DNA of 64,000 bases from Macrostomum lignano (taxonomy: Eukaryota): assembly GCA_002269645.1 (NCBI GenBank), contig NIVC01000725.1, positions 310,296 to 374,295 of the forward strand. The letters are read 5' to 3'. The number at the start of each line of letters is the position of its first letter. The stretch's first letter is position 1. Shown here one piece after another: positions 7,700 through 56,256 of the stretch. Below the pieces are notes generated by a model that searched no databases, had not been told where the DNA came from, and worked only from the letters and a program-made list of their open reading frames with translations. The position numbers and the translations under genes were made by a program.

Positions 7700-9394
7700 T
7701 CAGCGAACCAGCTGTGTTTCAATGCATCTGCTGTTGCTGCCTCCTGTGCCGCCGCCGCCGCCGCTTCTGCTGCTGCTACGGTTAGCTTTGGTCAAAGGAA
7801 AATGCCAGAACAGCAGGCGAGCGAATAGTTCTAGAAATTCAAACGTACTAATGATTGATACTCCGAGCCAGAGGCCGAGAATGCCTCCAATGTCCGACGC
7901 CAGATTTCGGTCCGGATAGGCCCAGCTCTCGCGCATCACACTGCCCATTGTAGAATGGGTATAGATTGTCAGTTTGGCGAACGACTCTCTAAAGGCTGGC
8001 TCTCGGTGCTCGTCGGACATTCGACGCTGAATCTCCACCAAGGTGGTCAAATCGTCGCCCTGTTCAGCGGCAAGTGCGATTGTCCGCTCGACGGCTTCGG
8101 CCAGGGCCTGGCTGGTCTCGTTGCAGGCGCTCGGCCAACGGTTCTGCGTGAAGCGCATCTCGTAGCGCACGTTTTTGCAGCGCAGCGGGCAAACGTCCGG
8201 GGCTAGGCCAGACGTCTTCTTGTGAATCTCGCTGACTACGGAATCGTGACAGGCCCTCCGGTGCTCGGCGGCTTGGTTGCGCTCGATTGCCGCCTCGGCC
8301 TCGGTGGCCGCCTGCTGGTCGATGCTCTCCATGAGGCTCTCCCGGCTAATGCTGTGGCAGAACGGCACGCTCAGATTAGAATTCAGATTGGCTGGCAGCG
8401 GCAGAGCCTCCGAAACGCAGGAACAGTTAGTGCGCAAGTAGGTTTGGTAAGTGTTGACGAGGCAGTCCCTGATAGTGTACCTGTACTCAGTGATTCGGTT
8501 ATACCTGTCGACAAACTTCACCGTTTGAAAGTTAGCATCAAGCGAGCAGTTTTTCAGCACGACCTCCTCCGTGTAGCCCAGCTGTACATAGGTGCTGGTG
8601 TCTCTCTGCACGTAGAAGCCTTCCAGTAGTTCGGGCCGAGTGCCCGGTTCGTGGATGACCGCGCGGAATCCTTCGGAGTAGCTAAGTGACTCCTCACCTG
8701 TAATAAAATTCTTCACGTCGCCGACGTACATGATGACGTTTAGGCCGCCGTCTCGCTCGCCGCCGACAATGAGGTGCCGCTCGGTTGGCGCAAACGTGTA
8801 ACAGCTGAAATAGTTCGGGTCTACGTAGAGGCTGAAGTTTCTATACGAGCAGCTGTCTCCGGCAAAGTCGCAGTGCAGAATCATCTCCTGCCGTTGCTTA
8901 GTAATGTTCAACTCACGTAGGTAGGACTTTATCGAGTGCATCACGTCGGCGTTAATGCTGATATTTGTGTCGGCGTTCTCTCCCGGATCCCAGAAGGTGC
9001 GAATATGATGCAGCAGCTCGTGAGTGCTAATGTTCAAACTAGGAACCGGCGGATTCTGCTGATAGCGCAATCGGCTGAAGTGACTCGTAGCGCAGATTGT
9101 CACGTCGGGGAAGACAAATTTTGTACCGTAAACGCTGGTCTCCGTGTTGACTGGCCGCTCCAAGTAGCGACTGAACAAGGCGAACAAGTGAGCGGTGAAG
9201 CCGGCTCCGGCTGCTAGGATGATAAACAGCCAAGCCGCTCTGTGCAGCGCGCCTTCGCCGTTTTCCACAATCTTGTGAAAGCCGTGCGCTGAGGTGCTGT
9301 CGCAGAATTGTCTAATCAGCTTCCTTCTACCGCCGACAATGCTGTCGGGTGTGGTTCGGTTTTCTCGGCTTCGTCTGGCTTGGATTTCTGGCAT
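7700..9394 (-). CDS. Degenerin/ENaC-family ion channel subunit, intronless, FaNaC-like TM2
   Basis: FCDSTSAHG pre-TM1 motif, FPDVTIC, CxFAGxxC, Cys-rich thumb, TM2 ASDIGGILGLWLGVSIISTFEF; first ATG at 9394 (the ORF track starts at an upstream TTG, 9460). Confidence 0.93.
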   Translation of the reverse strand: MPEIQARRSRENRTTPDSIVGGRRKLIRQFCDSTSAHGFHKIVENGEGALHRAAWLFIILAAGAGFTAHLFALFSRYLERPVNTETSVYGTKFVFPDVTICATSHFSRLRYQQNPPVPSLNISTHELLHHIRTFWDPGENADTNISINADVMHSIKSYLRELNITKQRQEMILHCDFAGDSCSYRNFSLYVDPNYFSCYTFAPTERHLIVGGERDGGLNVIMYVGDVKNFITGEESLSYSEGFRAVIHEPGTRPELLEGFYVQRDTSTYVQLGYTEEVVLKNCSLDANFQTVKFVDRYNRITEYRYTIRDCLVNTYQTYLRTNCSCVSEALPLPANLNSNLSVPFCHSISRESLMESIDQQAATEAEAAIERNQAAEHRRACHDSVVSEIHKKTSGLAPDVCPLRCKNVRYEMRFTQNRWPSACNETSQALAEAVERTIALAAEQGDDLTTLVEIQRRMSDEHREPAFRESFAKLTIYTHSTMGSVMRESWAYPDRNLASDIGGILGLWLGVSIISTFEFLELFARLLFWHFPLTKANRSSSRSGGGGGTGGSNSRCIETQLVR

Positions 9395-10434
9395 TGCTTC
9401 TGCACTCCTGTAGCTGACTGTCGGCAGGGAAGAAGTCGCCTTTCCAAAATCAAAACTCAAATCGAACCAATTTATTAAGCTCCAGTAGATTAATGGCTAA
9501 ATCTATATAGCTATTCGTCCATTGGCTCTGACTTTGAGCACCAATAGCTGCGATTAGCATTTTTGATCCTTCGTTTATTCACATAGATTCAGTTCAGAAA
9601 TAGCTACTCACGATTTAAATAGGACACTGAGGTTTCTTTCCTCTTTCCTTCTCTGTTAAAGCCTGATAAAGAGATGCTATATCCGCATGCTCAGGGTGGG
9701 TGGCTTTACTGTGCCCAGATGTAGTCTATTGGATGCAATGGACTGTTACTACTCATAACTGGTCTTTAAACTCTTTGGCATGTTTTGGAAAGTAGATAAA
9801 ACATACAAAAACATACAAAGTATAAAGAGTAACAAGACAATTGTTTAAAATGGTCTTGATAGCTATAGCTATAATGCACAGGCTATTTCTCAAAAACATT
9901 AATCCTTCATTTCTTCCACATTTGTTAAAAAAGTGTTTTGTGTTATCTTGTCAAGGAACTAAAGCGAAGCAACGTACTGGGGCCGTTTAATATTTTTACG
10001 GAGTATTTTAGTGTCAGTACCAGCGTGTGGATGCCTCAGCAGTATCCTGCAGCGCAGTGTCTGTCTGTCGGCAAAGTTAAAGCAAATACAGCTCTTGTAT
10101 AGCTTGACGCTATAAAGTTTATCAGCTGCAGACATCCGATTCTCAATAATTGATTCTCCAAACTCATACTCAAAGCTAATTTATAGTGCTATATGGCTGA
10201 AATAGAATATAAGCTATCGTAATTCAACTATCCAATGCAGGTGCCACAGTGCTTTCAAGGCAATTTTTCCGTTATGCTAAGAGGCAGGTAGCTGTTGTAC
10301 AGCTAAGATATTTTTATTCATATTTTTGCTGAATTTCTGCAAATATTTGATAACCTTCAATTCAAACCTATTAGAATTCTTAAATTAGCAGTTTGAGCAC
10401 GAGTCAATGTATGCTTTATGAATTTACTGAAGGG

Positions 10435-27720: not shown

Positions 27721-28210
27721 ATGTTTAGAATTGCATGAGACTTCCTTCCGACTTTAAAGAAAAGTGCAGATGCACTAAAAGAGGAGTCGCGACTTTCAGG
27801 GTAATTATTTAAATTGAAGCTTTAAATTATATTGGTGTCATATTTTAGAAAATTGGATCCGATGAGGTAAAAACCTTTGCCAAAGCCGACTCTTTTTGCC
27901 ATCGCCAAAAGACCAATTATTTTGTTCAATAATGGCAATAATTGGATTTTCTTGCAAACCACCTTCTTTAATAGGAGCTCAGGTGTCGAAAATTTCAGTG
28001 CTCTTCTGTCTCCTCTTGCTTTTTTCAATTATTTTTCAACCAAACACCAGAGGCTACTCAAGTCTATTCATTTCCGGTTCGTTCTCTAATCAAACGCTTC
28101 CGCTGTCTGATTTTGGGAATCTGCCATCGAAGGTTTCCATATAAAGACAAGCTTCATCTCTTTTGGCTCTGAAAGGCTGCAGCCATCCTCAATCATCGAC
28201 TTGGTCCGAG

Positions 28211-29401
28211 ATGAGCAACTCAACCGTACGGGAGGTTCCCGTCGAAGGGCAAGCGGCATTCGGGCCTAGCCTGCCCGGCATTGCCTCCGTACTGCAGGTT
28301 TTCTTCTATTACGTCATCTTGGCTAATGGTATTCTAGGCTTGCTAAACAACACCTTGTCGAGCCTGGTGTTCACCATCTACCGAACCAAGTTCCCGCCCT
28401 CCTGTCTGTACTTTATCGTCCTATCCGTGACCGATTTCTTTTGCTGTTGGTTTCTGTGCATCCTGTTCTGGACTGGCGAGTCGCTGCGACAGATGGGTGG
28501 TCGGAGCTTCGATCTGTTCACCTTGAGCCTGTCCAGCTGCAAGAGTCTGCGCTACCTGCAGCAGATCTTCATCAGCACAGGGGCCTACTCAGTGGTGGTG
28601 CTGTCATACGAGCGGGCCGCTTGCCTTGTATCACCAGTTCGATTTCTGAGCTTCTTCACGGTCCGGCGTCGCGTTGCCATGCTATCGAGCATCGCGCTCT
28701 TTGCTGCCGTCCTCTGGACGCAAACTTTTATTGCTTTCGACATTAGATCTCGATTTGTTAATAGCAGCCTAACGGGTTGCTATCCGAGTACCAAAGAGTC
28801 TGTAAGCTTCATCTTAGCTTACTCGTACGAGATGATATTCGTGAACTATACTGTGCCGGCTCTACTGATTTTGGGTGGCAACATTCTGGCCCTGATTGGA
28901 TACCGAATGAACCGAATCAAGCAGGCTCAGCAGAGCGAGCTTCCAGCACCTCTGGCGGGTAGCACAGTCGCGAATCGTCAGGCGGTTGAGAATGGAGTAA
29001 AGGTTACCATGGTGATGCTGTCAATGCAATATCTAATCCTAAACATGCCCTACTCTATCAGTTGGCCTCTATTTAGCTTTCTAAAGTACTTTAAGTACGA
29101 ACTAACGGATCCAACGATGTTTTACAACGCCTCCTACCTAAATTCCATCTTCATGGTTTTGTCTACCGTCAACTATTCCGTAAACTTCTATTTTTATCTT
29201 TTCAAAGTGAGGCGATTCAGGCGCTACCTGCTGCGTCTCCTCGGCTTTAATCGCTGCGAATTTCGGCGCAACAGACGTAGCAGCTCCAGCGGCAACGTTA
29301 ATGCGGCACCTGTGGTTGCTGGGGCCGCCTGTCGATCGGGTGGCTGCGGATCTGGTATCGATCCATTAGCTAGGAGTGGCAACTATCGCCCGAGCTTTTA
29401 G
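28211..29401 (+). CDS. Class A (rhodopsin-like) GPCR, peptide/FMRFamide-receptor-like, intronless
   Basis: Seven hydrophobic segments; GxxNN in TM1, LSVTD in TM2, YER at the DRY position, LNMPY in TM6, NYSVNFYFY in TM7 followed by RRFRRYL helix 8; first ATG at 28211. Confidence 0.9.
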   Translation: MSNSTVREVPVEGQAAFGPSLPGIASVLQVFFYYVILANGILGLLNNTLSSLVFTIYRTKFPPSCLYFIVLSVTDFFCCWFLCILFWTGESLRQMGGRSFDLFTLSLSSCKSLRYLQQIFISTGAYSVVVLSYERAACLVSPVRFLSFFTVRRRVAMLSSIALFAAVLWTQTFIAFDIRSRFVNSSLTGCYPSTKESVSFILAYSYEMIFVNYTVPALLILGGNILALIGYRMNRIKQAQQSELPAPLAGSTVANRQAVENGVKVTMVMLSMQYLILNMPYSISWPLFSFLKYFKYELTDPTMFYNASYLNSIFMVLSTVNYSVNFYFYLFKVRRFRRYLLRLLGFNRCEFRRNRRSSSSGNVNAAPVVAGAACRSGGCGSGIDPLARSGNYRPSF

Positions 29402-30690: not shown

Positions 30691-33600
30691 ATGGCCAGTC
30701 CGCCGCCTCGTCAATTTAAATCTGCAGCTGTTTTTTGACGGACAACTATTTCCTGGAAGAGCTGGGCATCCATCTGAATCTGCGTAGCCTGACAGATGAC
30801 AGCTTGAAATTGTCCAACAGCGAGCTGGAACAGCTTATAGCTAAAGCGAGTGAAATTTCAATTGTCAAATTCAAATTTTGTTATCTTAAATAACATATTT
30901 TTTATTTCTCGAATGGCTTACCTATTCAAAATCCCATAGCTCAGGTTTAAATACCTTAAATCCTATGTCATAAATACCATATTCTATATCTCAAATTCTA
31001 TTACTTCTATTATTCCAATCCCATACCCAAAATTCAAAATCCCAAGTCCCATATACCAAATCCCATACTCCAAATCCCATACCCCGACCCCATAATCCAA
31101 ATCCCATACCCCGATCTCATACCCCAAATTCTATACCCCAAATCCCATAATTCAAACACCAAATCCCTAATCCCATACCTCAGATAGATCCGATACCTCA
31201 TTTCCCATACCTTACCCCAATCCCATACCCCACATCTCATATTCCAATCACATACCCCTAATCCCATGCCCCAATCCCATATCTCAAATCCCATAGACTA
31301 ATCCCATAACTAAAAATCCCATACCCCATAACCAAAAAGTCCCATACCCGATAACCAAAAATCCCATACCCCATAACCAAAAATCCCATACCCCATAACC
31401 AAAAATCCCATACCCGATAACCAAAAATTCCATACCCCATAACCAAAAATCCCATACCCGATAACCAAAAATCCCATACCCGATAACCAAAAATCCCATA
31501 CCCCATTACCAAAAATCCCATACCCCATAACCAAAAATCCCATACCCCATAACCAAAAATCCCATACCCGATAACCAAAAATTCCATACCCCATAACCAA
31601 AAATCCCATACCCGATAACCAAAAATCCCATACCCGATAACCAAAAATCCCATACCCGATAACCATAAATCCCATACCCCATAACCAAAAATTCCATACC
31701 CGATAACCAAAAATCCCATACCCCATAACCAAAAATCCCATACCCGATAACCAAAATCCCATATCCCATTACCAAAGATCCCATACCCCATAAACAAAAA
31801 TCCCATACCCCATAACCAAAAATCCCATACCCCATAACCAAAAATCCCATACCCCATAACCGAAAATCCCATACCCCATAACCAAAAATCCCATACCCCA
31901 TAACCGAAAATCCCATACCCCATAACCAAAAATCCCATACCCCATAACCAAAAATCCCACACCCCACCGCAGTCCTGGCTCGAGCGTCATCCCAGCGCGG
32001 ACCGAGCTGCCCTGCAGCAGCAGCTCCGCCGCCTACAAGCGGAGGGGATTTTCTCCCGTTGTGCCGCCGAACTGCTAGCCGAGCAAACCCGTCGCGAGTC
32101 GAGGATGAAGCGAGCTTTGCTAGGGAGGCTGAGATTGCCAGCCGGCATGTGTACAAGAATCCGGACCTTTTTAGCTATGGCGAGGTGTCGCAGGTAATTG
32201 CCGAATAATTAAACAATTAGAACTTGGGATTTTCGTATTTTCCTTTTCCAATCCAAGCGTGAGTCGCTTGAGTAGCTTGGTTTTACCCTTGGTATGACTC
32301 ATTATCCTGCCAGAAAGAGTCAGTAACTATCCGCATTCTGCGCACATTTGCAATTGGGCATTAAAATACTAATATTTCTACTGTAAGTAAGTAACATGGG
32401 TCATTTTTTAATTGTATGAAGTTTCAACTTATTATATAAAGCGTTTTTGTCTTGCATTGCGCAATTTTTTTTCATTTCAGCGGTCCATGTTTGATCCCAG
32501 ATTTGTGGCCATTGTTGAGGCTTGTCGCCATGGCAACAAAGCGACACCTGGAGTGTCTATGGATGATCTGAGACAATACGGATTAAGGCAGGTGTTAGAG
32601 GTAAATTCCTTTACAAAACGCGACTACAGTTAGAAATTTTTGCCAGACTTGCAATAAAAAGTGATATTTGTTTAAAATGAATTCAAATACAAAATAGAGT
32701 TTAGTTTAGGATATAGTTCAGTTAGTATAGGGTTTAGTTTAGGCCATTGGGTTTAGGATAGGGTTTGGTTTAGGTTTATTTTAGAATATGGTTTAGTTTA
32801 GGATATGGTTTAGTTTAGGATATGGTTTAGTTTAGGATAGGGTTTAGTTTAGGATATGGTTTAGTTTAGGATATGGTTTAGTTTAGGATATGGTTTAGTT
32901 TAGGATATGGTTTAGTTTAGGATATGGTTTAGTTTAGGATAGGGTTTAGTTTAGGATAGGGTTTAGTTTAGGATAGGGTTTAGTTTACGATAGAGTTTAG
33001 TTTAGGCAATGAGTTTAGGATAAGGTTTAGTTTAGTGTAGATTTAGTTCAGAAAATAGGTTTTAGATTTGGATTTAAAAGTTAGAGTTTAGATTTGGGTT
33101 TAAAATAGGGTTAAAGCAAAGTTTAGGTTTAGAGAGTTAGGTTTAGGTTAGGGTTAAGTTTGGCAGTCAATCTGTAGCTGTCAAATATGCTCACCTATGC
33201 AGCAGCCTTCCTTTGAATTCAACAGTTCAGAATGTACATGCAAATACGGTGTACTATCAGTCAACTCAGTGCTAGAAGACAGTCTCCCATCTCCATCTCC
33301 CAGGACGTGTACTTTCTGCCAGTCTTCTCCCCATCCTTCTGCTCCGCCCTGCACTCCGAGTTCAGCCACTTCTCCGACCATTCGCCAGTGAAAACCGGCC
33401 GGCCGAACACCATGAACCGGGACGGCCTCCTATTGGACGAGCTCCGACCAATCAGAGCCTGGCTAGACCGGCTTCGATCCGATTGGCTGCAGCCGCTGGT
33501 TGATTGTCTGCTTCCGGAAGCGGCAAACGGGGCTAAATTGGACTCGCACCGAGCCTTCACAGTTCGCTACCTGCCTGGCAGGGACACCGGCCTCGGCTAT

Positions 33601-33951
33601 CACTATGACAACGCTGAGGCCACTCTAAACGTGTGTCTAACCGATTCCAATAGTTACCATGGCAACGCCTTGTACTTTGGCGATCTAGTCGAGCCCAAGC
33701 TTGGCGGCGGCTGTCCTTTGATCTCGCCGGAGCGGCTGGAAGCCTTGCCCGGCGTTGAGCAGCGCCTGGGCTGGGGGCTGCTGCACCCCGGACTGCGGAT
33801 GCATGGGGTTCGCCGCCTACTTGAGGGGACCCGTCTGAATCTCATCCTGTGGCTGCGGGCCAGCCGCCTGAGGAACCGTCTCTGCCCGCGCTGCTGGCGC
33901 CGGCCTGAGTGCACCCGGTTGAGCCAGCGCTACGGTGACGGCATGACCTGA
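30691..33951 (+). CDS. OGFOD2: 2-oxoglutarate/Fe(II) oxygenase OGFOD2; exons about 30691-30845, 31973-32193, 32481-32600, 33304-33951; two apparent 1-nt frameshifts
   Basis: MASPPPRQF..CSCFLTDN, ELLAEQTRR..AREAEIA, VYFLPVFSPSFC, GRPNTMN, LDSHRAFTVRY, GYHYDNAEATLNV, LHPGLRMHG, LNLILWLRAS..RNRLCPRC, YGDG match OGFOD2; the HxD...H facial triad is intact. Confidence 0.88.
30930..31960. repeat. 22-bp minisatellite (CCCATAACCAAAAATCCCATAC) filling an OGFOD2 intron
   Basis: Degenerate at its 5' end, homogeneous over 31300-31960, ending about 12 nt before the acceptor. Confidence 0.95.
32700..33155. repeat. 17-bp minisatellite (GGTTTAGTTTAGGATAK) in an OGFOD2 intron
   Basis: About 15 clean units plus degenerate TTTAGG-rich flanks. 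Confidence 0.9.
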
Positions 33952-39151: not shown

Positions 39152-42100
39152 GTCATGAATTGATTATAAATTGACTCCATGTGGTGCGCAGGCTTTGTTG
39201 AGACAGAGATAAATCCAGACTATGTCAACATTTGGCTCAGAGTTTGTATTTTCTATCTAAGTAAACCACCTTTTGCTCGTAATTATTTGTTATACTCATA
39301 CCAAACTTGACTGAATTGGAAGCAAGGCGTGTATGTTGAGGGTTACATGAATGTAGTTGTCCACCTAATGCATTTAATGGTTCACCTATAATCAACTGTA
39401 TCTCCGTTCCCTTTATTCTTTCTCCTATCTGTGCTCCCCAACCAGTCTCCTCGCGTCTTTCCATCGGTGTTTGCTGCAGACAAGCTGCGGACCATTTATT
39501 GATACAAGGGGACGCAGCCAACTGTAACTGCGGCCAGAATCATGTAGACGCCTGCATCACAATTCGAATAAAGGAAAAGGAAATTCAACACCCTAGAGAA
39601 CAAAAGAAGTAGGTTTTAGGCTACACGTCTGAAAGAGTGAACATCAACATGGGACACAAGTGTGGACACCTAGTTGGCACCGCGCCTTTATTGCCAGTAC
39701 TGCACACAGGCACTGAACTCATACACAGCTCACACAGGTGCACAGCAACCTTTGACTTTCCAATGCACACCAAGCCCCAAATTAATGAGGCTGAATCGAA
39801 CTAAGGATCGTGGTGGGAGAGTCAAACGTTTTCGAAATATGACCCGTGAGTCATAGAACTGGCCCACTTCGCTTCTCCCTGAGCAGTTCTTCTGCAGAAC
39901 GGGCTGGAACTGCGCGATATCCCTGTTTTGCTCCGCGATCGCGACGCACCCTTCGAGATTCGGGCCGCCCTGCCGAAGGCGTCCGTCTCAGCATCCGGCT
40001 GTCCGGCCAACGCGAGTTGCATCGCCTTCGCCACTCGAGCGTTCGGCAGCTACAGCTACTGGAATGGAGCGCTGCAGCCTGGCCTCGTGCCGAGCTGCGC
40101 CTCTGACTGCCGCGTGTTGGCGGACCCGTCCGAGGCCCACGCCCTGCTGTTCCACGGCTTCGATCTGCCGAGCAGACGTCGACTGCGTCAGATGCGACAG
40201 ACTCAGCCGAGTAGTCAGCTGTGGATCTACTACAGCCAGGAGAGTCCAGTGCACCTACTCACTAACCGGTGCGTTCGCGACTGCCTCATCTCGCCTTGGC
40301 TACCGTTTGCTGGTAGCGCTCTGGCGTTCGTCAAAGAGTTCGCGTTTCCGTCATACCTATTGCGCAACTATCCAGACACAACTGAGGAGGCCGGCTATTT
40401 CAATTGGACTGTCACCTACCGGAGGGATTCAACAATTTACTTACCTCACTCCAGGCTTGCTCGTGCTACAAACAATCAAGAGTAAGTGAATGCAAGATAT
40501 TGGTTATAGGGTAACCTGCGACTAAACTGGCCTCTTTTTTATCAACCTTAAGCGACATTGTTTCAAAATCGGTGAGAGGCATTGTTTCCGTTGCCGCCGA
40601 CTCTCCCGAGCAGGCACACAACCCTAGAAGACATTGACTTGTTGATTCTTAGCAGATCTTGTCTATCTTCTTGGGTTGCTGCGCAAGTACTTGCAAGAAC
40701 ATGCAAGGTCTTCGCTATGATAAATACTTAGGTAAACTTACCAGATCTGCGCGACTTGCTACATCGTACAAGATCTTATCTTTTATATCTTTTTATAGCT
40801 TCGAATCGCATATTTTCTTAAATTTATTGTCTTATCTTGTCAAAAAATAAAATATAGTTCAGCTAGAACACTTTAGCCAAATGAATAACAAAACAAATGT
40901 ACCTCCATCTTAGAAGACCCTGCAAGAACCTAGCAGATTGAGAAGATTGAGAAGATCAAAACAGAATGTCTTCTAGGGAAGCGACTGCAAAGGCATCAAT
41001 TGCACGAGCAGATCAGAACCGAGATTCCAACTTAGACCAAAATGAATATGTATAACTGCACTTGGAATCGAGCCTGGACAGCTGGCACATCAGAGCGCCG
41101 CGCTGGACCACTGGGCTACGGCCGCCATCCAGGCAGACTGACTTCAGCTCAAGCCCTGGTTTCTCACCAACTGATTTAGTGTAGCATTGCACTGACCTTG
41201 TGCAAATCTACAAGCTAGTACACAGATAGAAGAGAAAAAGTAGTGGAACTAGTTAATATATTGCTTGATTGCTGAGGATTTAGTCAATCAAAAGAAAGAA
41301 TTTATTCTTAGTTCCCGAATCTACCTTAAAGAAGACCTACTTTGCAGTTGTAAGGGGGTTGCAGCCCAGTGGTTAGAGCGTCAGACTCACGACTGAAAGG
41401 TTGGAGGTTCGATTCCAGGTCCCATCCTTGAGCAAGACACCTGACTCTGCAGATGTAAAATGGGTGCCAGCATTAACTGAAGTAACTGAGGGTGTGTGGC
41501 GACCCCGCAGTCCTTGGACTGAACAGCCGTACGCAGCCTTCAGATGCGCCGCGCAATAGCTGCGGCTGAGCTGTCGGTTGAACATCTGCTAATTAGGGCA
41601 GGTATAATCAAATCAAAAGAAGACCAGTCTGTAGCAGTAAAACTAACAGATTACAGTAAAGCAATTCATAATGCGTCACGTGAAGTGAACCTTTGCAACC
41701 CGATACTATTGGATACTTTAGTCAAAGGTATTCAGCCTGTTTTGTGAATTGGTGATCTAGTTCAGTGCACCTGTATTTTTGGCATAAGTAAAAAGCTTCT
41801 AATCAATGATTTGAATCCTATCGACCGATCACTGAAGTGAAAATTAACTTTTTTTCAGATACATAACGCTTCCACCGACGGTGTCCCTGGCTGTGAAGAG
41901 GCACCTGAGCTTCATTGTGGTGTCGAACTGTCACCCGTTTAATCGACGTCCTGAGATTCTGTCGGAGCTGTCCAAGCATATGGAGCTTCACATCTACGGC
42001 AGCTGCGGTGACAGAGTCCTGCCAGCCAGACAGAGCATAGCTGACCTTTCAAAGCAGTACTATTTCCACCTGAGCTTTGAGAACGCGTTTTGTCGTGATT

Positions 42101-42483
42101 ACATCACGGAGAAGTTCTTCTCCAACGGGCTGAATGGCCACGCTGTACCAGTGACGTTTGCTGGCTACTCAAGAGAGGACATCGAGGCTGTGGCTCCGCC
42201 GCACTCCTTTCTGTACGCCGGAGACTTTAAATCGCCCATGGCACTGGCCGAGAGATTAAAAAGTTTAGCCGCTAATCCGACAGAGTACAGCGCCTATCAC
42301 CGATGGAGAAGCTCATACGGATTTGTTAATCAAGACCAAAATCCGTCTTATAATTTGTTCTGCCAGATTTGCCGCAAACTGCGCGACAGCCACGCCGATT
42401 CCGCCATGCATCTGGATTTGAACAGATTCTATAACTCTGGTCGGCAGTGCAGACCACCAAATTATTACCCGTTTCATCGTTAG
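38593..42483 (+). CDS. Alpha-1,3-fucosyltransferase (GT10); exons 38593-38719, 39888-40481, 41859-42483
   Basis: Type II membrane N-terminus, ALLFHG, WIYYSQESP, FNWTVTYRRDS, VSNC, HIYGSCG, YYFHLSFENAFCRDYITEKF (alpha-1,3-FucT motif), YHRWR, CQICRKL; phase-consistent GT-AG junctions. Confidence 0.9.
39105..39153. repeat. (CT)n microsatellite
   Basis: Direct reading. Confidence 0.9.
41053..41125 (-). mobile_element. SINE family 2 head fragment (further fragments near 39760-39790 and 40545-40640)
   Basis: CTGCACTTGGAATCGAGCCTGG...CTGGGCTACGGCC matches the head of the 37100 copy. Confidence 0.7.
41352..41635 (+). mobile_element. tRNA-derived SINE family 1, near full-length, in a FucT intron
   Basis: A box GCCCAGTGGTTAGAGCG, B box GGTTCGATTCC, CTTGAGCAAGACACC core, 3' GGGCAGGTATAATCAAATC tail. 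Confidence 0.88.
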
Positions 42484-44092: not shown

Positions 44093-45460
44093 GACAGACA
44101 GAACTGACTGACAGAACGATAAGCGCGTGCATTGCCTACCAAATTTTACGGTCTTGTTTTTACTAATAAAGCCCTTTCTGTTTATATATGCATAAAATTT
44201 CAAACATTGCGTACAACATACAAAATGTTGTATTGTGGCAAAGTCGCTAGGCTTGCGTTTCTGTAATGACGAGATACAGAGATTTAGCTAATTTGTTCTA
44301 ATAAATACGAGCGTGTTATACACTGCCAAATTTATCTAAATCAAGCGAGACGAAGCTTTACAAAAATGAAGCTCGCGTTAAAGATTAGATGAGGCATACA
44401 GGATCGTGGCTTTTGTGCATGAGCCTGCTAAGCGTTGTTTCTGAACTATTTTCGCTCCGTTTCTCAGTGCCAGTGTGTCCAGTCTACAAGAATGTTGAGC
44501 GCAAGGCTGCTTATATAAATTAGGAATTCTGCAACTTAGCTATTAGAAAAAAAGGAAATCTATAAAGCATTCAGCATTGCTTTCCTGCCTACTAAAAGTA
44601 GCGTAAAATGTATAATTAGCCTGTTTGTATTATGAATAGCTGGGGCCAGTGTCATGAAGGAAGTACAAGTTTCTCACTATTGATACAGCAGAAAGAGGAG
44701 TGACAAAGGGGATGTCAAAATGGAGCCCGAGACATTCGGTCTGGACTTCTTTACGCCAGTCTCTTTTTTATTTGGAGTCAAATAGCTCCCGTTATGCCTA
44801 AATGATGGGATTGGCTTTTTTCTGGAGTCTCAAGTTCAAATGAAATCCCCATCTATCTCGTTTCTCCCCATAAAGATCCCCAAATGTCTCAAAGGTTTTA
44901 GGCGAAGTCGGTTCGGTTGTCGGTTTCATAAAACAAAACGTTGATTGCAAGTAAATTGATTACAATTGACTACAATTTGTTACAATTGATTGTATTGATT
45001 ACGTATAACCGCACCTCTGAAGTCCGTTAGTTCATTCTGCTACATTTGCGACCAATCTGAGGCGCATTCTCGCAAATTAGCCTGGATCTTATTTACTAAA
45101 ACATCAGGAGCAGCTAATTAGAGTGCAGCGGTATAGGGGCGAGGCTGGTTGCTAGCCATGCCATGCAGTAGCTTTTCATTCGCTATTTTTCGCACGGATG
45201 CCTGCAACGCAGTCTCGCAGGAAATGGATTATTTTTGCATTGAAGACAGAAAAATGGGTCGGATAGGCGTTGAGTTCGGCAATTATGGGCTAGCCAGGCA
45301 TTCTGAATAGTTGGGGAAAACTTCCCCGTGACGAAGCATTAGCGATGCCATTGGCTGGGCCAGGCTGCTTCGAGAGCATACAAAAGTCCCGTTTGGCTAT
45401 GCCCTCATCCTTACTTTGACTCCATCTATCCGAACACAACGAATAGTTAGCATAGCATTG

Positions 45461-48422
45461 ATGCTACTAATAGTAGTTGCAGTCTTGGCTTTACTGCTGC
45501 CGGCAGCACGAACTGCCATGTTGGATGCGCTGACCGCTTCAGCTTGCAGGCCCGGCTCAGTGGCTCTGGCGGCAGCAGTCAGTGCGGGAAGCTGCGAATC
45601 TGGCAACCTGCCAGTAGCCGGCTGGGAGACTCGCTTCCTGCGCGCTTTCGCTGCGTTTCACGCCGCAGAGCTGGCGAACGCGGATCCCAGCTTGGCGTTC
45701 GCGAACGCGTCGGGGCCAGCGGGATATCCGGCTTTGGGCCTCGTCTACCGGGACACCTGCTGGCGCGAGGACGTTGCGGCAGAGTTTGTCCGACGCCTGG
45801 AGCCGCACTGGCTCTATCCGGATGTGTACACTGGCAACTCCAGCGGCCTCTGCCGTCTGAGAGGTCAGCCCGGCTCTCGGCCGCTGTACTTCGTCCTGGG
45901 CCTTGTCGGCGGCTGGTACAGCTCGGAGACGCGAACAATGTCCCGCGTAGTGCAGCTTTCCGGCCTGCCGCAGGTGGCCACGGAGGCGAGCAGCGATCAG
46001 TTCAGCGACAAGTCCGAGTTCCCCAACCTGTTCAGGCTGGTGCCGCCGGACTCTTATCAGTCGCGCGTGCTGGCCGACGTTATTCTGCACTTCGGCTGGA
46101 CCTACGTTGGGCTGTTCTACGCAGACACCGCCAACGGCAGCGGTCTGGCTTTGAAGCTACGAGAGGCGCTGCAGCCAACCAGAGTCTGTCTGGCTTTTTC
46201 CGTCGGAATGAACAAGTTGGTCACGAAGGATGTTCTGCTAACAAAGCTCAGAGCTGCTCAGGCCATGCGAGTTCTGGTTGTGGTGGAGCAATTGTACAAC
46301 CTGCCGAAAGATGTTCTGGAGTACATTGGCAGCAGAGGCATTCTGTTGATTCTGACAGACATCAACTTTACTGGCTTTAAGCACTACAGTAAATACGCGC
46401 TCACTGTATCCTTCAAGAGATTTCCTGCGCCAAGTATGATGGAAAAGTACCTGAACTTCACCTACTCTGACTTTCTTCGCTACCCCTATGGCTTAGAGAC
46501 TGCCAGAGCGCTTTTCAACTGTTCTGTCTGCACAAAGTGTTGTCAGTTGAACTCAAGCATAAGAGCTGGTTCAGTCTCCAAGTTCAACGCATCGGCAGTG
46601 ATAGTTCCCGCTGCCAGAACTATTGATGCTGTACACTCCATCGCTAGAGCGATTAGCCAGGTAGCTACAGGACCAAACTGCTCAGCATATTTTCGCAATC
46701 GATTCGACGAGCCATTAATAAGCTGCATGACAAGCGACAAGTTGCTGTCAGCGTTGCGTTCTCAAAACTTCACCGGGCTGGCTGGAACTGTTGGCTACGA
46801 CTCACACGGAGACGGCCTGCCGAACTACGTGGTTGAGCAGCAGGTGTCGGATGCGGATTCTGACACTCGAGTGGTTGCATCCTGGCAGGCTGGCAGTGGG
46901 TTAACTGTGCACTCGGACAGGCTTACCTGGCCTGCTGTCCCCCAGTCCCGGTGCAGAGAGCCCTGCTCTGCCGGCCAGTACCGCATGGATCTGGACATCT
47001 GCTGCTGGCTCTGTCGGGACTGTCGAACCAACGAAATTGTATCGAGCAACGGCAGTCTTTGTCTGGCTTGTGAAGCTTTCCAATGGCCGTCGGCGGACAG
47101 ACTGAGCTGCAGTCCACTGCCCGTCACCCAGCCTGGCGGAGCTGTCGCGATCTACGCTATCAGCGGAGTCGGTTTCGTCTCTGCCGTCACCTCCGCAGGC
47201 TTTGTTGTCTGGCATCGCGGAGATCAGCTGTTGAAGGCGTCTTCGATAGAGCTGAGCCTATGCAGTCTGGCGGGAATCGCAGTGGGTTACGCCGACGCAT
47301 TCGCCTTCATGTGGCCTCCGTCAACGCTGCTGTGCAACCTCAAAAACTGGCTGTTCCACCTTAGCCTGACGCTGGCTTACGCCAGCCTGTTTGTCAAGAC
47401 CGCCAGAATCTACCGGGTGTTTGCGAACTCAATGAGCGGTAGATCGAAAACCAGGTTCACGAGTCGCGCGTCTGTGCTCGCTGGAACCTTAATTATTCTT
47501 ATGGTTCAGGTGAGTAAATATCGTTCAGATTTTTACGGATATTCAAGAAACTATGGTTTATTAATAAATTCAGCTGCATTTTGTAGGAACTGCACTTACA
47601 CTGCACTCTCTGCCCCAGGAGGTTCATGACTCTCTTGCCTAAACTTGCTTATTATTTACTAAGTCTCAACCATCACTTCACCTCCACCCAAATATCTGCA
47701 GCAGTTCTTTGCAGCAGCTTTATTATCGTTGTAATTTTTTTGTTGTCCTTCGATTTTGAGGGCCACAGTGTGGTCAGAAAGTATATAAATATACTTGCCC
47801 CTCAGCGCCACAACAAACGCTCTAGGGAGGCAAACGTAGACTTCACACACATTTCTTATTAGTTACCCAGGTACGAACTTTTTCCGAATCCTCTAAGCGC
47901 CATTTGCATTCTCAGGCAGTCATTCTGACGGTGCTGACGTTGCTACAACCGATCGAGGTTATCCAGCTGCAGACGTCTGCTGTTCAGTCGTCAGACAGCT
48001 CAAAACCGGCTTCAGTTGAAGAGGACTGCAACTTCGTCCTTCAGATGACCGGCTGGGCTCCCCTAGCCTTCAATTTGATTCTGGTCCTAGCCACATCCGG
48101 GCTGTCGTTGCGAACCAGACACCTGCCGGAGAACTTTCACGACACCAAGTGCATCCTGGCGAGCTCAGCGTGCGCCGTGTTCCTCTGGACTGCCTTCGTG
48201 CCGGCCCTGCTGACTGCAGGACAGCTCGCCACGCAGTCCCTGCTCCTCTGCTTTGCTCTTCTATCAACAAACACCCTCGCCCTGGCGGTGCTGTTCGGGC
48301 CGAAGTTCTACGCGATTCTGGTCGGCTCAAGTAGGCATGGAAACTTCAATTTCTATGGAGGCGCCACTGTGCGCAATTGTGCCACTGCTGATAATGCCAC
48401 AGAGGATCCTGGAGATAAGTAG
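45461..48422 (+). CDS. Class C GPCR, metabotropic glutamate receptor-like; exons 45461-47509, 47916-48422
   Basis: Signal peptide, Venus flytrap (DTC, FSDKSEFPNLFRLVPPD, FGWTYV), Cys-rich domain (PQSRCREPC..CCWLC..C...C..C...WP), 7TM with VKASS-like LLKASSIELS, KTARIYRVF, LPENFHDTK, LFGPKFY. Confidence 0.92.
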
Positions 48423-48985: not shown

Positions 48986-50790
48986 TTTAGCACCAGGGGC
49001 TTTAGCACCAGGGGCTTTAGCACCAGGGGCTTTAGCACCAGGGGCTTTAGCACCAGGGGCTTTAGCACCAGGGGCTTTAGCACCAGGGGCTTTAGCACCA
49101 GGGGCTTTAGCACCAGGGGCTTTAGCACCAGGGGCTTTAGCACCAGGGGCTTTAGCACCAGGGGCTTTAGCACCAGGGGCTTTAGCACCAGGGGCTTTAG
49201 CACCAGGGGCTTTAGCACCAGGGGCTTTAGCACCAGGGGCTTTAGCACCAGGGGCTTTAGCACCAGGGGCTTTAGCACCAGGGGCTTTAGCACCAGGGGC
49301 TTTAGCACCAGGGGCTTTAGCACCAGGGGCTTTAGCACCAGGGGCTTTAGCACCAGGGGCTTTAGCACCAGGGGCTTTAGCACCAGGGGCTTTAGCACCA
49401 GGGGCTTTAGCACCAGGGGCTTTAGCACCAGGGGCTTTAGCACCAGGGGCTTTAGCACCAGGGGCTTTAGCACCAGGGGCTTTAGCACCAGGGGCTTTAG
49501 CACCAGGGGCTTTAGCACCAGGGGCTTTAGCACCAGGGGCTTTAGCACCAGGGGCTTTAGCACCAGGGGCTTTAGCACCAGGGGCTTTAGCACCAGGGGC
49601 TTTAGCACCAGGGGCTTTAGCACCAGGGGCTTTAGCACCAGGGGCTTTAGCACCAGGGGCTTTAGCACCAGGGGCTTTAGCACCAGGGGCTTTAGCACCA
49701 GGGGCTTTAGCACCAGGGGCTTTAGCACCAGGGGCTTTAGCACCAGGGGCTTTAGCACCAGGGGCTTTAGCACCAGGGGCTTTAGCACCAGGGGCTTTAG
49801 CACCAGGGGCTTTAGCACCAGGGGCTTTAGCACCAGGGGCTTTAGCACCAGGGGCTTTAGCACCAGGGGCTTTAGCACCAGGGGCTTTAGCACCAGGGGC
49901 TTTAGCACCAGGGGCTTTAGCACCAGGGGCTTTAGCACCAGGGGCTTTAGCACCAGGGGCTTTAGCACCAGGGGCTTTAGCACCAGGGGCTTTAGCACCA
50001 GGGGCTTTAGCACCAGGGGCTTTAGCACCAGGGGCTTTAGCACCAGGGGCTTTAGCACCAGGGGCTTTAGCACCAGGGGCTTTAGCACCAGGGGCTTTAG
50101 CACCAGGGGCTTTAGCACCAGGGGCTTTAGCACCAGGGGCTTTAGCACCAGGGGCTTTAGCACCAGGGGCTTTAGCACCAGGGGCTTTAGCACCAGGGGC
50201 TTTAGCACCAGGGGCTTTAGCACCAGGGGCTTTAGCACCAGGGGCTTTAGCACCAGGGGCTTTAGCACCAGGGGCTTTAGCACCAGGGGCTTTAGCACCA
50301 GGGGCTTTAGCACCAGGGGCTTTAGCACCAGGGGCTTTAGCACCAGGGGCTTTAGCACCAGGGGCTTTAGCACCAGGGGCTTTAGCACCAGGGGCTTTAG
50401 CACCAGGGGCTTTAGCACCAGGGGCTTTAGCACCAGGGGCTTTAGCACCAGGGGCTTTAGCACCAGGGGCTTTAGCACCAGGGGCTTTAGCACCAGGGGC
50501 TTTAGCACCAGGGGCGCCAGCACCAGAGGCGCCAGCACCAGGGGCGCCAGCACCAGGGGCGCCAGCACCAGGGGCGCCAGCACCAGGGGCGCCAGCACCA
50601 GGGGCGCCAGCACCAGGGGCGCCAGCACCAGGGGCGCCAGCACCAGGGGCGCCAGCACCAGGGGCGCCAGCACCAGGGGCGCCAGCACCAGGGGCGCCAG
50701 CACCAGGGGCGCCAGCACCAGGGGCGCCAGCACCAGGGGCGCCAGCACCAGGGGCGCCAGCACCAGGGGCGCCAGCACCAGGGGCGCCAG
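48986..50790. repeat. 15-bp satellite: about 100 identical AGCACCAGGGGCTTT units followed by about 18 AGCACCAGGGGCGCC units
   Basis: Direct reading; explains the KPLVL/GFSTR ORFs. Confidence 0.98.
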
Positions 50791-52965: not shown

Positions 52966-52973
52966 TATATAAG
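52966..52973 (+). promoter_or_regulatory. Candidate TATA box of the Cys-rich peptide gene
   Basis: TATATAAG about 80 nt upstream of the ATG at 53049. Confidence 0.5.
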
Positions 52974-53048
52974 AGAGAGATCTGTTCCGAGCCAAGCGTT
53001 CAATCAGTCCAAGGCAACTTCTAAGCGCGCCTAATCTGTTCAGCAAAA

Positions 53049-53670
53049 ATGTCCGCCGCCTGCAAAACCGCCCTCGTCGCGATCTTCATGCTCGCCAGTT
53101 TAATCTCACTGGGACTCGCCGCCAGTCATGCTGAACTGATGGAGCTGCCGGCTGCTGCAGTGGCCAAGTCCGGCATCCAATTCGCTAAAAGGATTCGCAT
53201 GGACAGTGAGTCATACTTGAACTGGAAAGGCCAAACCCCCCCCTCCCAATAGAAAGTCAGGACCGATGTGCAACCATGAGTGAACGGGGCTGCCTGTGTG
53301 TCAGAAAACGATAAAAAATGAAAGATAAGAGCTACAATTTCAATGAAAAAAGGACTATTAGAGACAGAAAGCTAGATAATGTACAACACGCTCGTGGAAA
53401 GTAAATAGCAGGAAGGCAGGAAGGCAGTACTAACCCTGGTGCAACGCCTTCGTCTGGTGTTCGTCTGACACGTGATACATCGTTTGACACCTTTACAATG
53501 TTGCCAGCGCCCCCCCTCTCTTCACTCCGATTGCAGCTCACCGAGCATTTGTACCGTTCTGCACCTATCGTTGCGAGATGCACTTTGGTAGGGAACGGGG
53601 CTGCGTCGGCTACGTCAATCAGAAGGAGGGCAACTGCCTGTGCGCCTGCCCCCGGCCTGCTGGCAACTGA
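53049..53670 (+). CDS. 96-aa secreted Cys-rich prepropeptide (defensin/mytilin-like); exons 53049-53205, 53537-53670
   Basis: Phase-1 intron A|GTGAGT...TTGCAG|CT gives MSAACKTALVAIFMLASLISLGLAASHAELMELPAAAVAKSGIQFAKRIRMDTHRAFVPFCTYRCEMHFGRERGCVGYVNQKEGNCLCACPRPAGN*: signal peptide, pro-region, KR site, six Cys. Confidence 0.78.
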
Positions 53671-54027
53671 TTAACCGATTCGCCGTTGGCTGACAGCTCA
53701 CCGGAAAATGCGCTTAAATGCTACGCACCGATTAATAGATATTTTCCGCACATTCCCAATTAGATATTTCTCGGCAAGACTGAGAAGTTTTATCATTTAC
53801 CATTTTAAAAGCAAGTTTGTAAGTTAATCAAATCAGCCAATGGACAGAAATACTCCGGACTAACTATAACCTACTACTGTACAGTAGAATGACTTGAGTT
53901 TAGTTTTTATTATTTTAACATCATCAACAATACAACATTCACTTACAGCGCATATGAAAGTGATTGCAGCTGTATGATTGATAGCTGAAGTAGTGAAACT
54001 TCTTTGAGAGCTTCTTCACATATATTA

Positions 54028-54292
54028 ACAGAGATTCACAGAGATTCACAGAGATTCAAAGTGATTTACACAGATTCACGAGATTTACAGAGATTCACAT
54101 AGATTCACAGAGATTCACAGGGATTTACAGAGATTCACAGAGATTCAATGTGATTTATAGAGATACACAGAGATTCACACAGATTCACAGAGATTCACAA
54201 AGATTCACACAGATACACAGAGATTCACAGAGATTCACACAGATACACAGAGATTCACAGAGATTCACAGAGATACACAGAGATTCACAGAT
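54028..54292. repeat. 10-bp satellite (AGAGATTCAC), left arm
   Basis: About 26 units including the AAAGTGATTT variant. Confidence 0.93.
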
Positions 54293-54954
54293 TTTGTATT
54301 AATAAGCAATGTTGGAAATCCAAACTTCCACTTTCTAAGAACCGCGTTTAGTTGAGAGGAAAATCGTTCTAAAATGAAAGCAGCAATGAAAAGCAACTGC
54401 AGTTAGAAATGACATCTAAGTAGCTACGCGCGTAATTAAAGTGCTTAATTTACAAGCAGATAAGAGTTGAAATACGTGTTAAAAGGTAGATTGCAGAGTT
54501 CGGAGCAACAGACGTCATTAGCTTGACAACCACGATCCCTTCTGATCGAATTTTGGTCAGGAATGTTGCTCCGAACTCGTGACCTGTTTGAGGGCATCCT
54601 CAAATTAAAGTACAATTAACAAATGGAAATTTCCGAAAGTCTATTGGGTGACACTTAAATTAAATAAATGCGTGTGATTCGTTATTGAGTATCGATTAGA
54701 AAATAAGAATGTCTAACTAATATGAAAAAAATGTTCAATCTATTAGTTACAGTGACAATGCAAATGTGCTTTAGTTATTAGCTGACCTATTTTTGGATTG
54801 CTACTGGAGCGACTGTATATAAATATGAATTAGCACCTTTGCTCCATGCAATGATGTTTTTAAAATGATGTTTCACTGCACGTTTCATAACAGAAATATA
54901 TTGAATACTTAGCAATATACAGCTTACGTATATACGCTTGTACATTGTGATGGC

Positions 54955-56256
54955 TGTGAATCTCTGTGAATCTCTACGAATCTCTGTGAATCTCTGTGAA
55001 TCTCTGTGAATCTCTGTGAATCTCTATGAATCTTTGTAAATCTCTGTGAATCTCTGTGAATCTCTATGAATCTCTATGAATCTCTGTGAATCTCTGTGAA
55101 GCTCCGTGAATCTTTGTGAATCTCTGTGAATCTCTGTGAATCTCTATAAATCACTTTGAATCTCTGTGAATCTCTATGAATCTCTATGAATCTCTGTGAA
55201 TCTCTGTGAAGCTCTATGAAACTCTATGAACCTCTGTGAATCTTTGTGAATCTTTGTGAATCTCTGTGAATCTCTGTGAATCTCTGTGAATCTCTGTGAA
55301 TCTCTATGAATCTCTGTGAATCTCTGTGAATCTCTATGAATCTCTATGAATCTCTGTGAATCTTTGTGAATCTCTGTGAATCTCTGTGAATCTCTGTGAA
55401 TCTCCGTGAATCTCCGTGAATCTTTGTGAATCTCTGTGAATCTCTGTGAATCTCTATAAATCACTTTGAATCTCTGTGAATCTCTATGAATCTCTATGAA
55501 TCTCTGTGAATCTCTGTGAAGCTCTATGAAACTCTATGAATCTCTGTGAATCTTTGTGAATCTTTGTGAATCTCTGTGAATCTCTGTGAATCTCTGTGAA
55601 TCTCTGTGAATCTCTATGAATCTCTGTGAATCTCTGTGAAGCTCTATGAATCTCTATGAATCTCTGTGAATCTTTGTGAATCTTTGTGAATCTCTGTGAA
55701 TCTCTATAAATCTCTGTGAATCTCTGTGAATCTCTATGAATCTCTGTGAATCTTTGTGAATCTCTGTGAATCTCTGTGAATCTCTGTGAATCTCCGTGAA
55801 TCTCCGTGAATCTTTGTGAATCTCTGTGAATCTCTGTGAATCTCTATAAATCACTTTGAATCTCTGTGAATCTCTATGAATCTCTATGAATCTCTGTGAA
55901 TCTCTGTGAAGCTCTATGAAACTCTATGAATCTCTGTGAATCTTTGTGAATCTTTGTGAATCTCTGTGAATCTCTGTGAATCTCTGTGAATCTCTGTGAA
56001 TCTCTATGAATCTCTGTGAATCTCTGTGAAGCTCTATGAATCTCTATGAATCTCTGTGAATCTTTGTGAATCTTTGTGAATCTCTGTGAATCTCTATAAA
56101 TCTCTGTGAATCTCTGTGAATCTCTATGAATCTCTGTGAATCTTTGTGAATCTCTGTGAATCTCTGTGAATCTCTGTGAATCTCTGTGAATCTCTGTGAA
56201 TCTCTGTGAATCTCTATAAATCACTTTGAATCTCTGTGAATCTCTGTGAATCTCTG
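54955..56256. repeat. 10-bp satellite (GTGAATCTCT), right arm, inverted relative to 54028-54292
   Basis: About 130 units; AAATCACTTT marker at 55148, 55458, 55848 and 56218. Confidence 0.96.

Follow-up and report, generated by a model that had tools for sequence, protein, structure and literature searches.

Defensins with a cysteine-stabilised alpha-beta (CS-alpha-beta) fold are believed to occur almost throughout plants, fungi and invertebrates. A third disulfide, between the first strand and a cysteine that lies N-terminal to the helix, completes the fold (array C2-C6; Tarr 2016), and in the defensin genes of arthropods and molluscs a single exon, preceded by a phase-1 intron, holds the whole mature domain (PMC6435467). 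The nematode peptide ASABF-6Cys-alpha is a six-cysteine member of the same group that has no N-terminal cysteine, and its disulfides cannot follow the canonical bonding pattern (Tarr 2016). The mytilins of Mytilus (PDB 2EEM; PF10690, Myticin-prepro) have eight cysteines, spaced C-x3-C-x3-C-x4-C-x11-C-x-C-x-C-x2-C and joined by four disulfides. Here we analyse a stretch of 64,000 nucleotides from the flatworm Macrostomum lignano (contig NIVC01000725.1, positions 310,296 to 374,295 of the forward strand; hereafter the window) and the gene BOX15_Mlig020375 that lies within it. We regard its product as a defensin-like peptide with a cysteine-stabilised-helix motif but a rewired third disulfide, known so far only from M. 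lignano, whose affinity with the mytilins is suggestive but unproven.

The window is identical, base for base, to M. lignano scaffold NIVC01000725.1 of assembly GCA_002269645.1 (Mlig_3_7), with window position 53049 corresponding to about scaffold position 363344. When the two exons of the gene are read directly from the window and spliced, they yield a 96-amino-acid precursor, MSAACKTALVAIFMLASLISLGLAASHAELMELPAAAVAKSGIQFAKRIRMDTHRAFVPFCTYRCEMHFGRERGCVGYVNQKEGNCLCACPRPAGN (Table 1), which is 100% identical across 100% of its length to GenBank PAA68142.1/PAA77746.1 (BOX15_Mlig020375); the gene span annotated in the public scaffold runs exactly from ATG to stop. The splice donor reads ACA followed by GTGAGT after 53205, and the acceptor reads CTCTCTTCACTCCGATTGCAG followed by C before 53537, where a pyrimidine tract and then TTGCAG close the intron. 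Because exon 1 contributes 157 coding nucleotides, the intron is in phase 1, and the mature cysteine domain falls in one exon behind it, as in the defensin genes of arthropods and molluscs. The Mlig_3_7 gene models were derived from genome-guided RNA-seq assembly (StringTie/TACO and the TBONE boundary pipeline), with open reading frames (ORFs) called by TransDecoder (PMC5730564), which lends the splice junction indirect support from transcripts. BOX15_Mlig020375 is a genuine M. lignano gene, with transcript support of this indirect kind.

An earlier, sequence-only reading of the window had proposed at this place a hidden two-exon gene with a TATA box upstream, encoding a signal peptide, a pro-region and a six-cysteine domain spaced 3, 9, 10, 1 and 1. 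The splice signals and the GenBank identity bear out this architecture, the spacing is correct, and the box, TATATAAG, lies at 52966-52973. The gene is hidden only in the sense that it is absent as a whole from the list of ORFs, which shows just a 67-amino-acid read-through of exon 1 and a 30-amino-acid piece of exon 2; it is already annotated as an RNA-seq-derived GenBank model, and it stands in UniProt and UniRef under the automatic label "INVERT_DEFENSINS domain-containing protein". A paralogue, too, is already listed as antimicrobial-like in a published supplement. No paper discussing BOX15_Mlig020375 was found in a literature search.

Table 1. Features of the peptide gene and of its surroundings (window coordinates)
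Feature	Position	Strand	Details
TATA-like box TATATAAG	52966..52973	+	about 76 nt upstream of ATG; read directly
Start codon ATG	53049	+	read from sequence
Exon 1, coding part	53049..53205	+	157 nt; codons 1-52 and the opening base of codon 53; codes for signal peptide and pro-region
Signal peptide, about residues 1-24 (predicted)	53049..53120	+	putative cleavage after A24 or S26
Pro-region, residues 25-48, slightly acidic	53121..53192	+	ends in dibasic K47-R48 (codons 53187-53192)
Intron, GT-AG, phase 1	53206..53536	+	331 nt; splice signals read directly; TACTAAC at 53428-53434
Exon 2, coding part	53537..53670	+	rest of codon 53 to stop; contains entire cysteine domain
Six-cysteine core C61-x3-C65-x9-C75-x10-C86-x-C88-x-C90	53560..53649	+	read from translation
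Stop codon	53668-53670	+	read from sequence
GOST seven-transmembrane protein	2019-2633	+	Pfam
ASC/DEG-ENaC channel	7700-9460	-	Pfam
Rhodopsin-type G protein-coupled receptor	28163-29401	+	Pfam, just below gathering score
OGFOD2-like	33232-33951	+	Pfam
Family-10 fucosyltransferase	41881-42483	+	Pfam
Class C G protein-coupled receptor	45416-47629	+	Pfam

The N-terminus of the precursor resembles a signal peptide, with K6 followed by a 17-residue hydrophobic core, TALVAIFMLASLISLGL, and then by the small residues A-A-S; residues 7-18 are hydrophobic, with a 9-residue Kyte-Doolittle mean of up to 2.9. The pro-region, which had been read as ending in AKRIR, stands, but it is K47-R48 that is invariant between the two paralogue families described below, the KRIR motif not being conserved. 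Convertase cleavage would be expected at K47-R48 and, since only the KR is shared with the paralogue, the mature peptide most likely starts as IRMDTH at I49 (48 amino acids, 5.5 kDa). This 48-residue peptide has a net charge of +3 and an isoelectric point (pI) of 8.7. The weak positive charge reported earlier, about +2, is thus slightly raised, and it is no argument against a defensin because Phormia defensin A has the same charge and pI. A search of all six frames of the window finds the strict cysteine pattern (3, 9, 10, 1, 1) once, and 100 block shuffles produced it 0 times; the precursor ends 6 residues past the last cysteine. A gamma-core is present, as had been claimed, although not in the form C-x-G-x8-C then given; it is the levomeric C-x9-C-x-G form rather than G-x-C.

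An exhaustive HMMER search of 1.84 billion representatives returned a sole further relative, BOX15_Mlig034330 (E = 5e-4), which UniProt also names after the invertebrate-defensin profile. It is present in three genomic copies (g1-g3) on a different scaffold from the window gene. Although the two families are only 35-45% identical and the paralogue has a shorter pro-region, BOX15_Mlig034330 retains all six cysteines with identical spacing, the dibasic KR and a net charge of +3, and the motif R-C..HFG...GCVGY.N...G.C.C.C is conserved in both. The phase-1 intron lies exactly 8 codons before the first cysteine in both genes, and the ATG of the paralogue, too, is preceded at a distance of about 100 nt by a TATA-like box, TATAAATA. 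BOX15_Mlig034330 is a true homologue of the window gene, and no other observation argues as strongly for a functional peptide as the conservation of these features. The search for relatives that had been proposed earlier therefore yielded one paralogue family and nothing else: no relative outside M. lignano was found in the HMMER search or in two word-indexed searches of 5.8 billion proteins, and no tandem paralogue was found within the 64-kb window by tblastn of the product. Among the entries listed by Irvine et al. 2023 (PMC10414684), BOX15_Mlig034330g2/g3 form antimicrobial-like peptide group 149 of a machine-learning pipeline; their file S5 scores the paralogue as SignalP-positive, with 54.5% of predictors antimicrobial-positive, and the group is given as dropped because it was present in a single genome only. 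The window gene was not found among the rows listed in the antimicrobial-like peptide file of that study.

Structure prediction, which had been put forward as a check, points to a helix followed by a hairpin. The AlphaFold2 model of a single sequence (46 residues; predicted local distance difference test, pLDDT, 82.9) has a short strand, a helix at 9-19 and strands at 26-30 and 35-39, and in the model made with a three-sequence alignment (40 residues; pLDDT 81.0) the helix spans 5-17 and the strands span 24-28 and 33-37. In both models the CxxxC (C61/C65) is in the helix, C86, C88 and C90 are in the last hairpin strand and C75 is just before the first strand, and the register of the hairpin places C75 opposite C90. 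From the placement of helix and strands and from this register we infer the pairing C61-C86, C65-C88 and C75-C90, in which the first two disulfides would be classical cysteine-stabilised-helix bridges and the last a cross-strand staple. The cysteine-stabilised helix motif, in which the helix carries CxxxC and the last strand carries CxC, is present at the level of sequence and prediction, and a CS-alpha-beta (defensin-like) fold is plausible but unproven.

The comparison with the six-cysteine defensins of arthropods and molluscs (Phormia defensin A and others; PS51378; PF01097) brings out likenesses as well as differences. Shared are a prepro-region ending in KR, the CxxxC, the x9 to the next cysteine and the CxC, along with the predicted helix and hairpin and an equal net charge and pI. 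However, the window peptide is without a cysteine N-terminal to the helix, which makes the canonical C1-C4 bond impossible, and has instead an extra cysteine past the CxC; its hairpin loop is x10, not x4-9, it has Arg for the usual His before the second helix cysteine, and it has GC for GxC. ASABF-6Cys-alpha is a precedent for a six-cysteine member without the N-terminal cysteine, although its cysteine positions (array C3-C6, C8 and C9) differ from those of the window peptide, which has no PF16839 match. Insulin-like and knottin-type frameworks were ruled out by inspection of the cysteine spacing.

The resemblance to mytilin that was noted in the sequence-only reading is reproducible. In a BLASTP alignment with mytilin B, the sequence of which was checked against PDB 2EEM, there are 14 identities in 33 positions, and all six cysteines align, to mytilin cysteines 1, 2, 4, 5, 6 and 7. 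By Smith-Waterman comparison mytilin B was the best of nine CS-alpha-beta comparators (z = 4.9), and no composition-preserving shuffle of 2000 scored as high; the paralogue BOX15_Mlig034330 reached a z of only 1.9 against the same peptide. An hhalign comparison with 12 mytilin precursors covered 39 columns with P = 6.5e-4, and in a re-run against the mytilin profile (score 21.3) 6 of 300 column-shuffled queries scored as high or higher. The resemblance is above chance and is not proof of homology. The two peptides share the CxxxC, a C-GY that opens a long hairpin (x10 versus x11 in mytilin) and the terminal CxCxC. However, the equivalents of mytilin Cys3, in the helix, and of Cys8, the last, are absent, so that two of the mytilin disulfides are impossible in the window peptide. 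The mytilin precursor consists of signal, mature peptide and about 47 acidic residues C-terminal to it, as against signal, pro-region, KR and mature peptide here, and the net charge of mytilin B is +9, as against +3. By cysteine number, Pfam model (PF10690) and precursor layout, then, the peptide does not qualify as a member of the mytilin/myticin family, whereas the likeness itself exceeds what shuffled sequences give.

Several results weigh against reading the peptide as a CS-alpha-beta host-defence molecule, and we gather them here. At E up to 10 the peptide matched none of the Pfam models for defensins, myticins, ABFs and gamma-thionins (PF01097, PF00304, PF16839, PF10690), under conditions in which known peptides matched their models at 1e-8 to 1e-25 (mytilin B at 1.7e-9 and myticin A at 5e-16, both with PF10690); nothing was found in a Pfam scan of the paralogue BOX15_Mlig034330. 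No defensin emerged from searches of PDB sequences, whether the query was the single sequence or a profile. By hhalign the probability was 0.7% against arthropod and mollusc defensins and 0.5% against ASABF, it did not exceed 1.4% against small alignments of arthropod and mollusc defensins, of mytilin with myticin, and of ASABF, and it was only 27.6% in the comparison with the 12 mytilin precursors. Neither model had a significant Foldseek match in the PDB, with no E below 0.8, and no defensin was among the top 50 for the 46-residue model. The stretch from the KR site to the CxxxC holds no cysteine, the sixth cysteine coming after the CxC instead, and with no cysteine N-terminal to the helix the canonical C2-C6 disulfide is impossible. 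The name that UniProt gives to both families derives from the PROSITE invertebrate-defensin profile PS51378, and PROSITE profile matches of this kind may be borderline. Searches by gene identifier, in the full-text literature and in the supplements of five M. lignano papers turned up no data on expression, induction or activity. Lastly, a survey by BLAST searches and by searches with hidden Markov models (HMMs) over 33 flatworm species, in which both M. lignano annotations were included, concluded that flatworms encode no CS-alpha-beta peptides, big defensins or myticalins, an absence of CS-alpha-beta peptides that its authors termed surprising (Irvine et al. 2023, PMC10414684).

Some matches met in these searches were set aside. 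The Pfam matches to YacG (15 bits) and to the Shavenoid-B N-terminal domain (14-15 bits), against cut-offs of about 25, are cysteine-spacing noise; the only PDB sequence match was an oxalyl-CoA decarboxylase, at E = 1; and the Foldseek matches of the 46-residue model to CBF-beta and calsequestrin are meaningless. For the second model, among 350,542 chains, ASABF (2d56) ranked second with a template-modelling (TM) score of 0.43 and the plant defensin AtD90 (7jn6) ranked fourth with a TM score of 0.50, at E of 2-3 and, for AtD90, with a root-mean-square deviation of 2.9 over 33 columns. Since the queries are only about 40 residues long a weak Foldseek signal is expected, and the ranks of these two structures lend weak support to a CS-alpha-beta-like fold. 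The CS-alpha-beta likeness proposed earlier is thus favoured by the predicted topology of helix and hairpin, by the UniProt label and by the gene layout, but not by a significant defensin match in HMMER, hhalign or Foldseek, nor by the N-terminal cysteine, which is absent.

On balance, we put at roughly even the chances that the gene encodes a secreted prepropeptide that is cut after KR to give a mildly cationic helix-hairpin peptide, with two classical bridges and one non-canonical bridge, that serves as a host-defence effector. The signal peptide would direct the product into the secretory pathway, and the pro-region would probably be removed after K47-R48 by a convertase of the furin or proprotein convertase (PC) type, leaving the 48-residue peptide. 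The peptide would then fold as a cysteine-stabilised helix packed on a beta-hairpin (CS-alpha-beta-like, or cis-defensin-like), its helix CxxxC bonded to the last-strand CxC and C75-C90 stapling the two strands in place of the bond that usually ties the first strand to an N-terminal cysteine. The most likely role, if invertebrate defensins and mytilins are taken as analogues, is that of a secreted antimicrobial effector. Processing sites, fold, disulfide pairing and antimicrobial function are all offered here as predictions. Plectasin-type defensins bind lipid II partly through the n-loop and its cysteine; because both are absent from the window peptide, its precise target need not be that of the plectasin-type peptides.

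CS-alpha-beta scaffolds are put to non-immune uses elsewhere, for example in scorpion toxins. The M. lignano peptide might thus share the helix and hairpin of a defensin and act in signalling, in reproduction (as a seminal-fluid or gland product) or as an ion-channel-modulating, toxin-like peptide. The conserved KR is a dibasic site of the prohormone type, although pro-regions ending in KR are usual in insect defensin precursors too, and a family of one lineage with rapid paralogue divergence (35-45% identity) is typical of reproductive and secretory-gland genes. Names and cysteine patterns are poor predictors of activity, and toxins share the fold (Tarr 2016); the N-terminal loop used by classical defensins is absent. 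On the other hand, charge and pI are those of an antibacterial defensin, the paralogue is antimicrobial-like, and no transcript-to-tissue evidence was found in the M. lignano literature and supplements. We consider such a non-immune role unlikely, if well worth weighing. It is also conceivable that the peptide is a Macrostomum-specific cysteine-rich peptide whose fold is not CS-alpha-beta at all, the CxxxC and CxC, the PROSITE label and the mytilin likeness having arisen by convergence or chance. This would agree with the non-significance of all calibrated homology tests, with Foldseek E values that all exceed 0.8, with the mytilin profile score that 6 of 300 column shuffles reach and the paralogue z of 1.9, with the impossibility of the defining C2-C6 bond, and with the generally lineage-specific nature of flatworm cysteine-rich peptides (Irvine et al. 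2023, PMC10414684). Yet a helix and hairpin come out of two independent AlphaFold2 runs, each cysteine lying in the element where it is expected; it is unlikely that chance put two CS-alpha-beta structures among the first four Foldseek matches; the intron has the phase and position seen in defensin genes; and in the pairwise comparison with mytilin B all six cysteines align, at a score that none of 2000 shuffles attains. We judge a wholly different fold to be unlikely.

The most sceptical explanation, that the gene is an annotation artefact or a non-functional remnant, either a chance pair of ORFs or a pseudogene in duplicated DNA, strikes us as hardly credible. Divergence between the exons of the three genomic copies (0-1.3%) is too low for selection, and in particular purifying selection, to be demonstrated from that comparison. 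However, an RNA-seq-based pipeline produced the gene model, all three copies have an intact reading frame, a paralogue of 35-45% identity retains all the cysteines with their spacing as well as the KR site and the intron, and the strict cysteine pattern never arose in the 100 shuffles. At the other end lies a bolder claim than the host-defence explanation that we favour: that both Macrostomum families are vertically inherited cis-defensins and distant homologues of the mytilins, in which C75-C90 replaces the canonical N-terminal disulfide, and that Platyhelminthes would have in them their first bona fide host-defence peptides of the CS-alpha-beta type. We advance this tentatively and regard it as doubtful for the present.

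The gene is present in three syntenic genomic copies, the window (L001), L002 and L004, each of which continues into a protein-kinase gene on the minus strand. In the window this neighbour is a multi-exon gene (Pkinase / PK_Tyr_Ser-Thr) at about 56675-63670, and since it lies downstream of the peptide gene in all three copies, these are large syntenic duplicates and not dispersed repeats. Three near-identical copies fit the known neopolyploidy of M. lignano. The cysteine domain is identical at the protein level in all of them, exon 2 differing by one synonymous change. Over the 291 coding bases, the window differs from L002 by one synonymous change, and from L004 by two nonsynonymous changes, in the signal and pro-region, and one synonymous change. 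The TATA-like box, a putative promoter element, is unchanged in L002.

Several further observations concern the transcript and its database entries. The heptamer TACTAAC in the intron is a perfect branch-point-like match about 100 nt 5' of the acceptor, which would be unusually distant for a branch point. Spliced-leader trans-splicing is common in M. lignano, and an AG dinucleotide lies just 5' of the ATG, 3-5 nt away, in both paralogue families: ttcAG before caaaaATG in the window (53042-53048) and aattAG before ccaATG in the paralogue (L003, 4996-5000). This AG could be a spliced-leader trans-splice acceptor, alongside or in place of short 5' untranslated regions driven by the TATA box. An older UniProt model, A0A1I8I6D2 (400 amino acids, 'Apple domain-containing protein'), is chimeric and covers window positions 53049-53640 and 56407-56898; it joins exon 1 of the peptide gene and most of exon 2, as far as ...EGNCL, to an ORF about 3 kb downstream, with the loss of the last two cysteines. 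A 56-amino-acid ENA metagenome protein, P0004 (MYVEDRGIWSRES...), shares a 90%-identity cluster with the defensin-like protein without visible similarity to it, and its placement there is probably a clustering artefact.

A Pfam scan of the 64-kb window revealed no immune-gene cluster around the peptide gene; the domains that it did find include those of the proteins in Table 1. Minisatellites with a 10-bp unit (TTCACAGAGA and its complement) occupy 54015-54291 and 54954-56000, beginning about 350 nt past the stop codon, and the only other match to a loose CS-alpha-beta-type pattern in the window is an artefact that falls inside a 10-bp minisatellite. The first array (54015-54291) is much shorter in L002 and is thus length-polymorphic between subgenome copies. 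A further array of 1.8 kb, at 48986-50785, holds 120 copies of a 15-bp unit (TTTAGCACCAGGGGC) that are 99% identical and produces long spurious ORFs on both strands; many arrays like it across the window account for most of the long ORFs in the ORF list.

Homology searches missed this family, and the negative HMM results obtained here for the window peptide explain why; only the PROSITE generalised profile, by way of UniProt naming, flags it. If the two families are indeed cis-defensins, the published conclusion that flatworms lack CS-alpha-beta peptides would be overturned, and surveys by HMM and BLAST would be shown to miss members whose disulfides have been rewired. Once validated, a defensin-like family in an early-branching flatworm that is tractable to RNA interference and transgenesis would fill a phylogenetic gap, would offer a natural case in which the third disulfide of a defensin scaffold has been rewired, and would open an entry to the innate immunity of flatworms.

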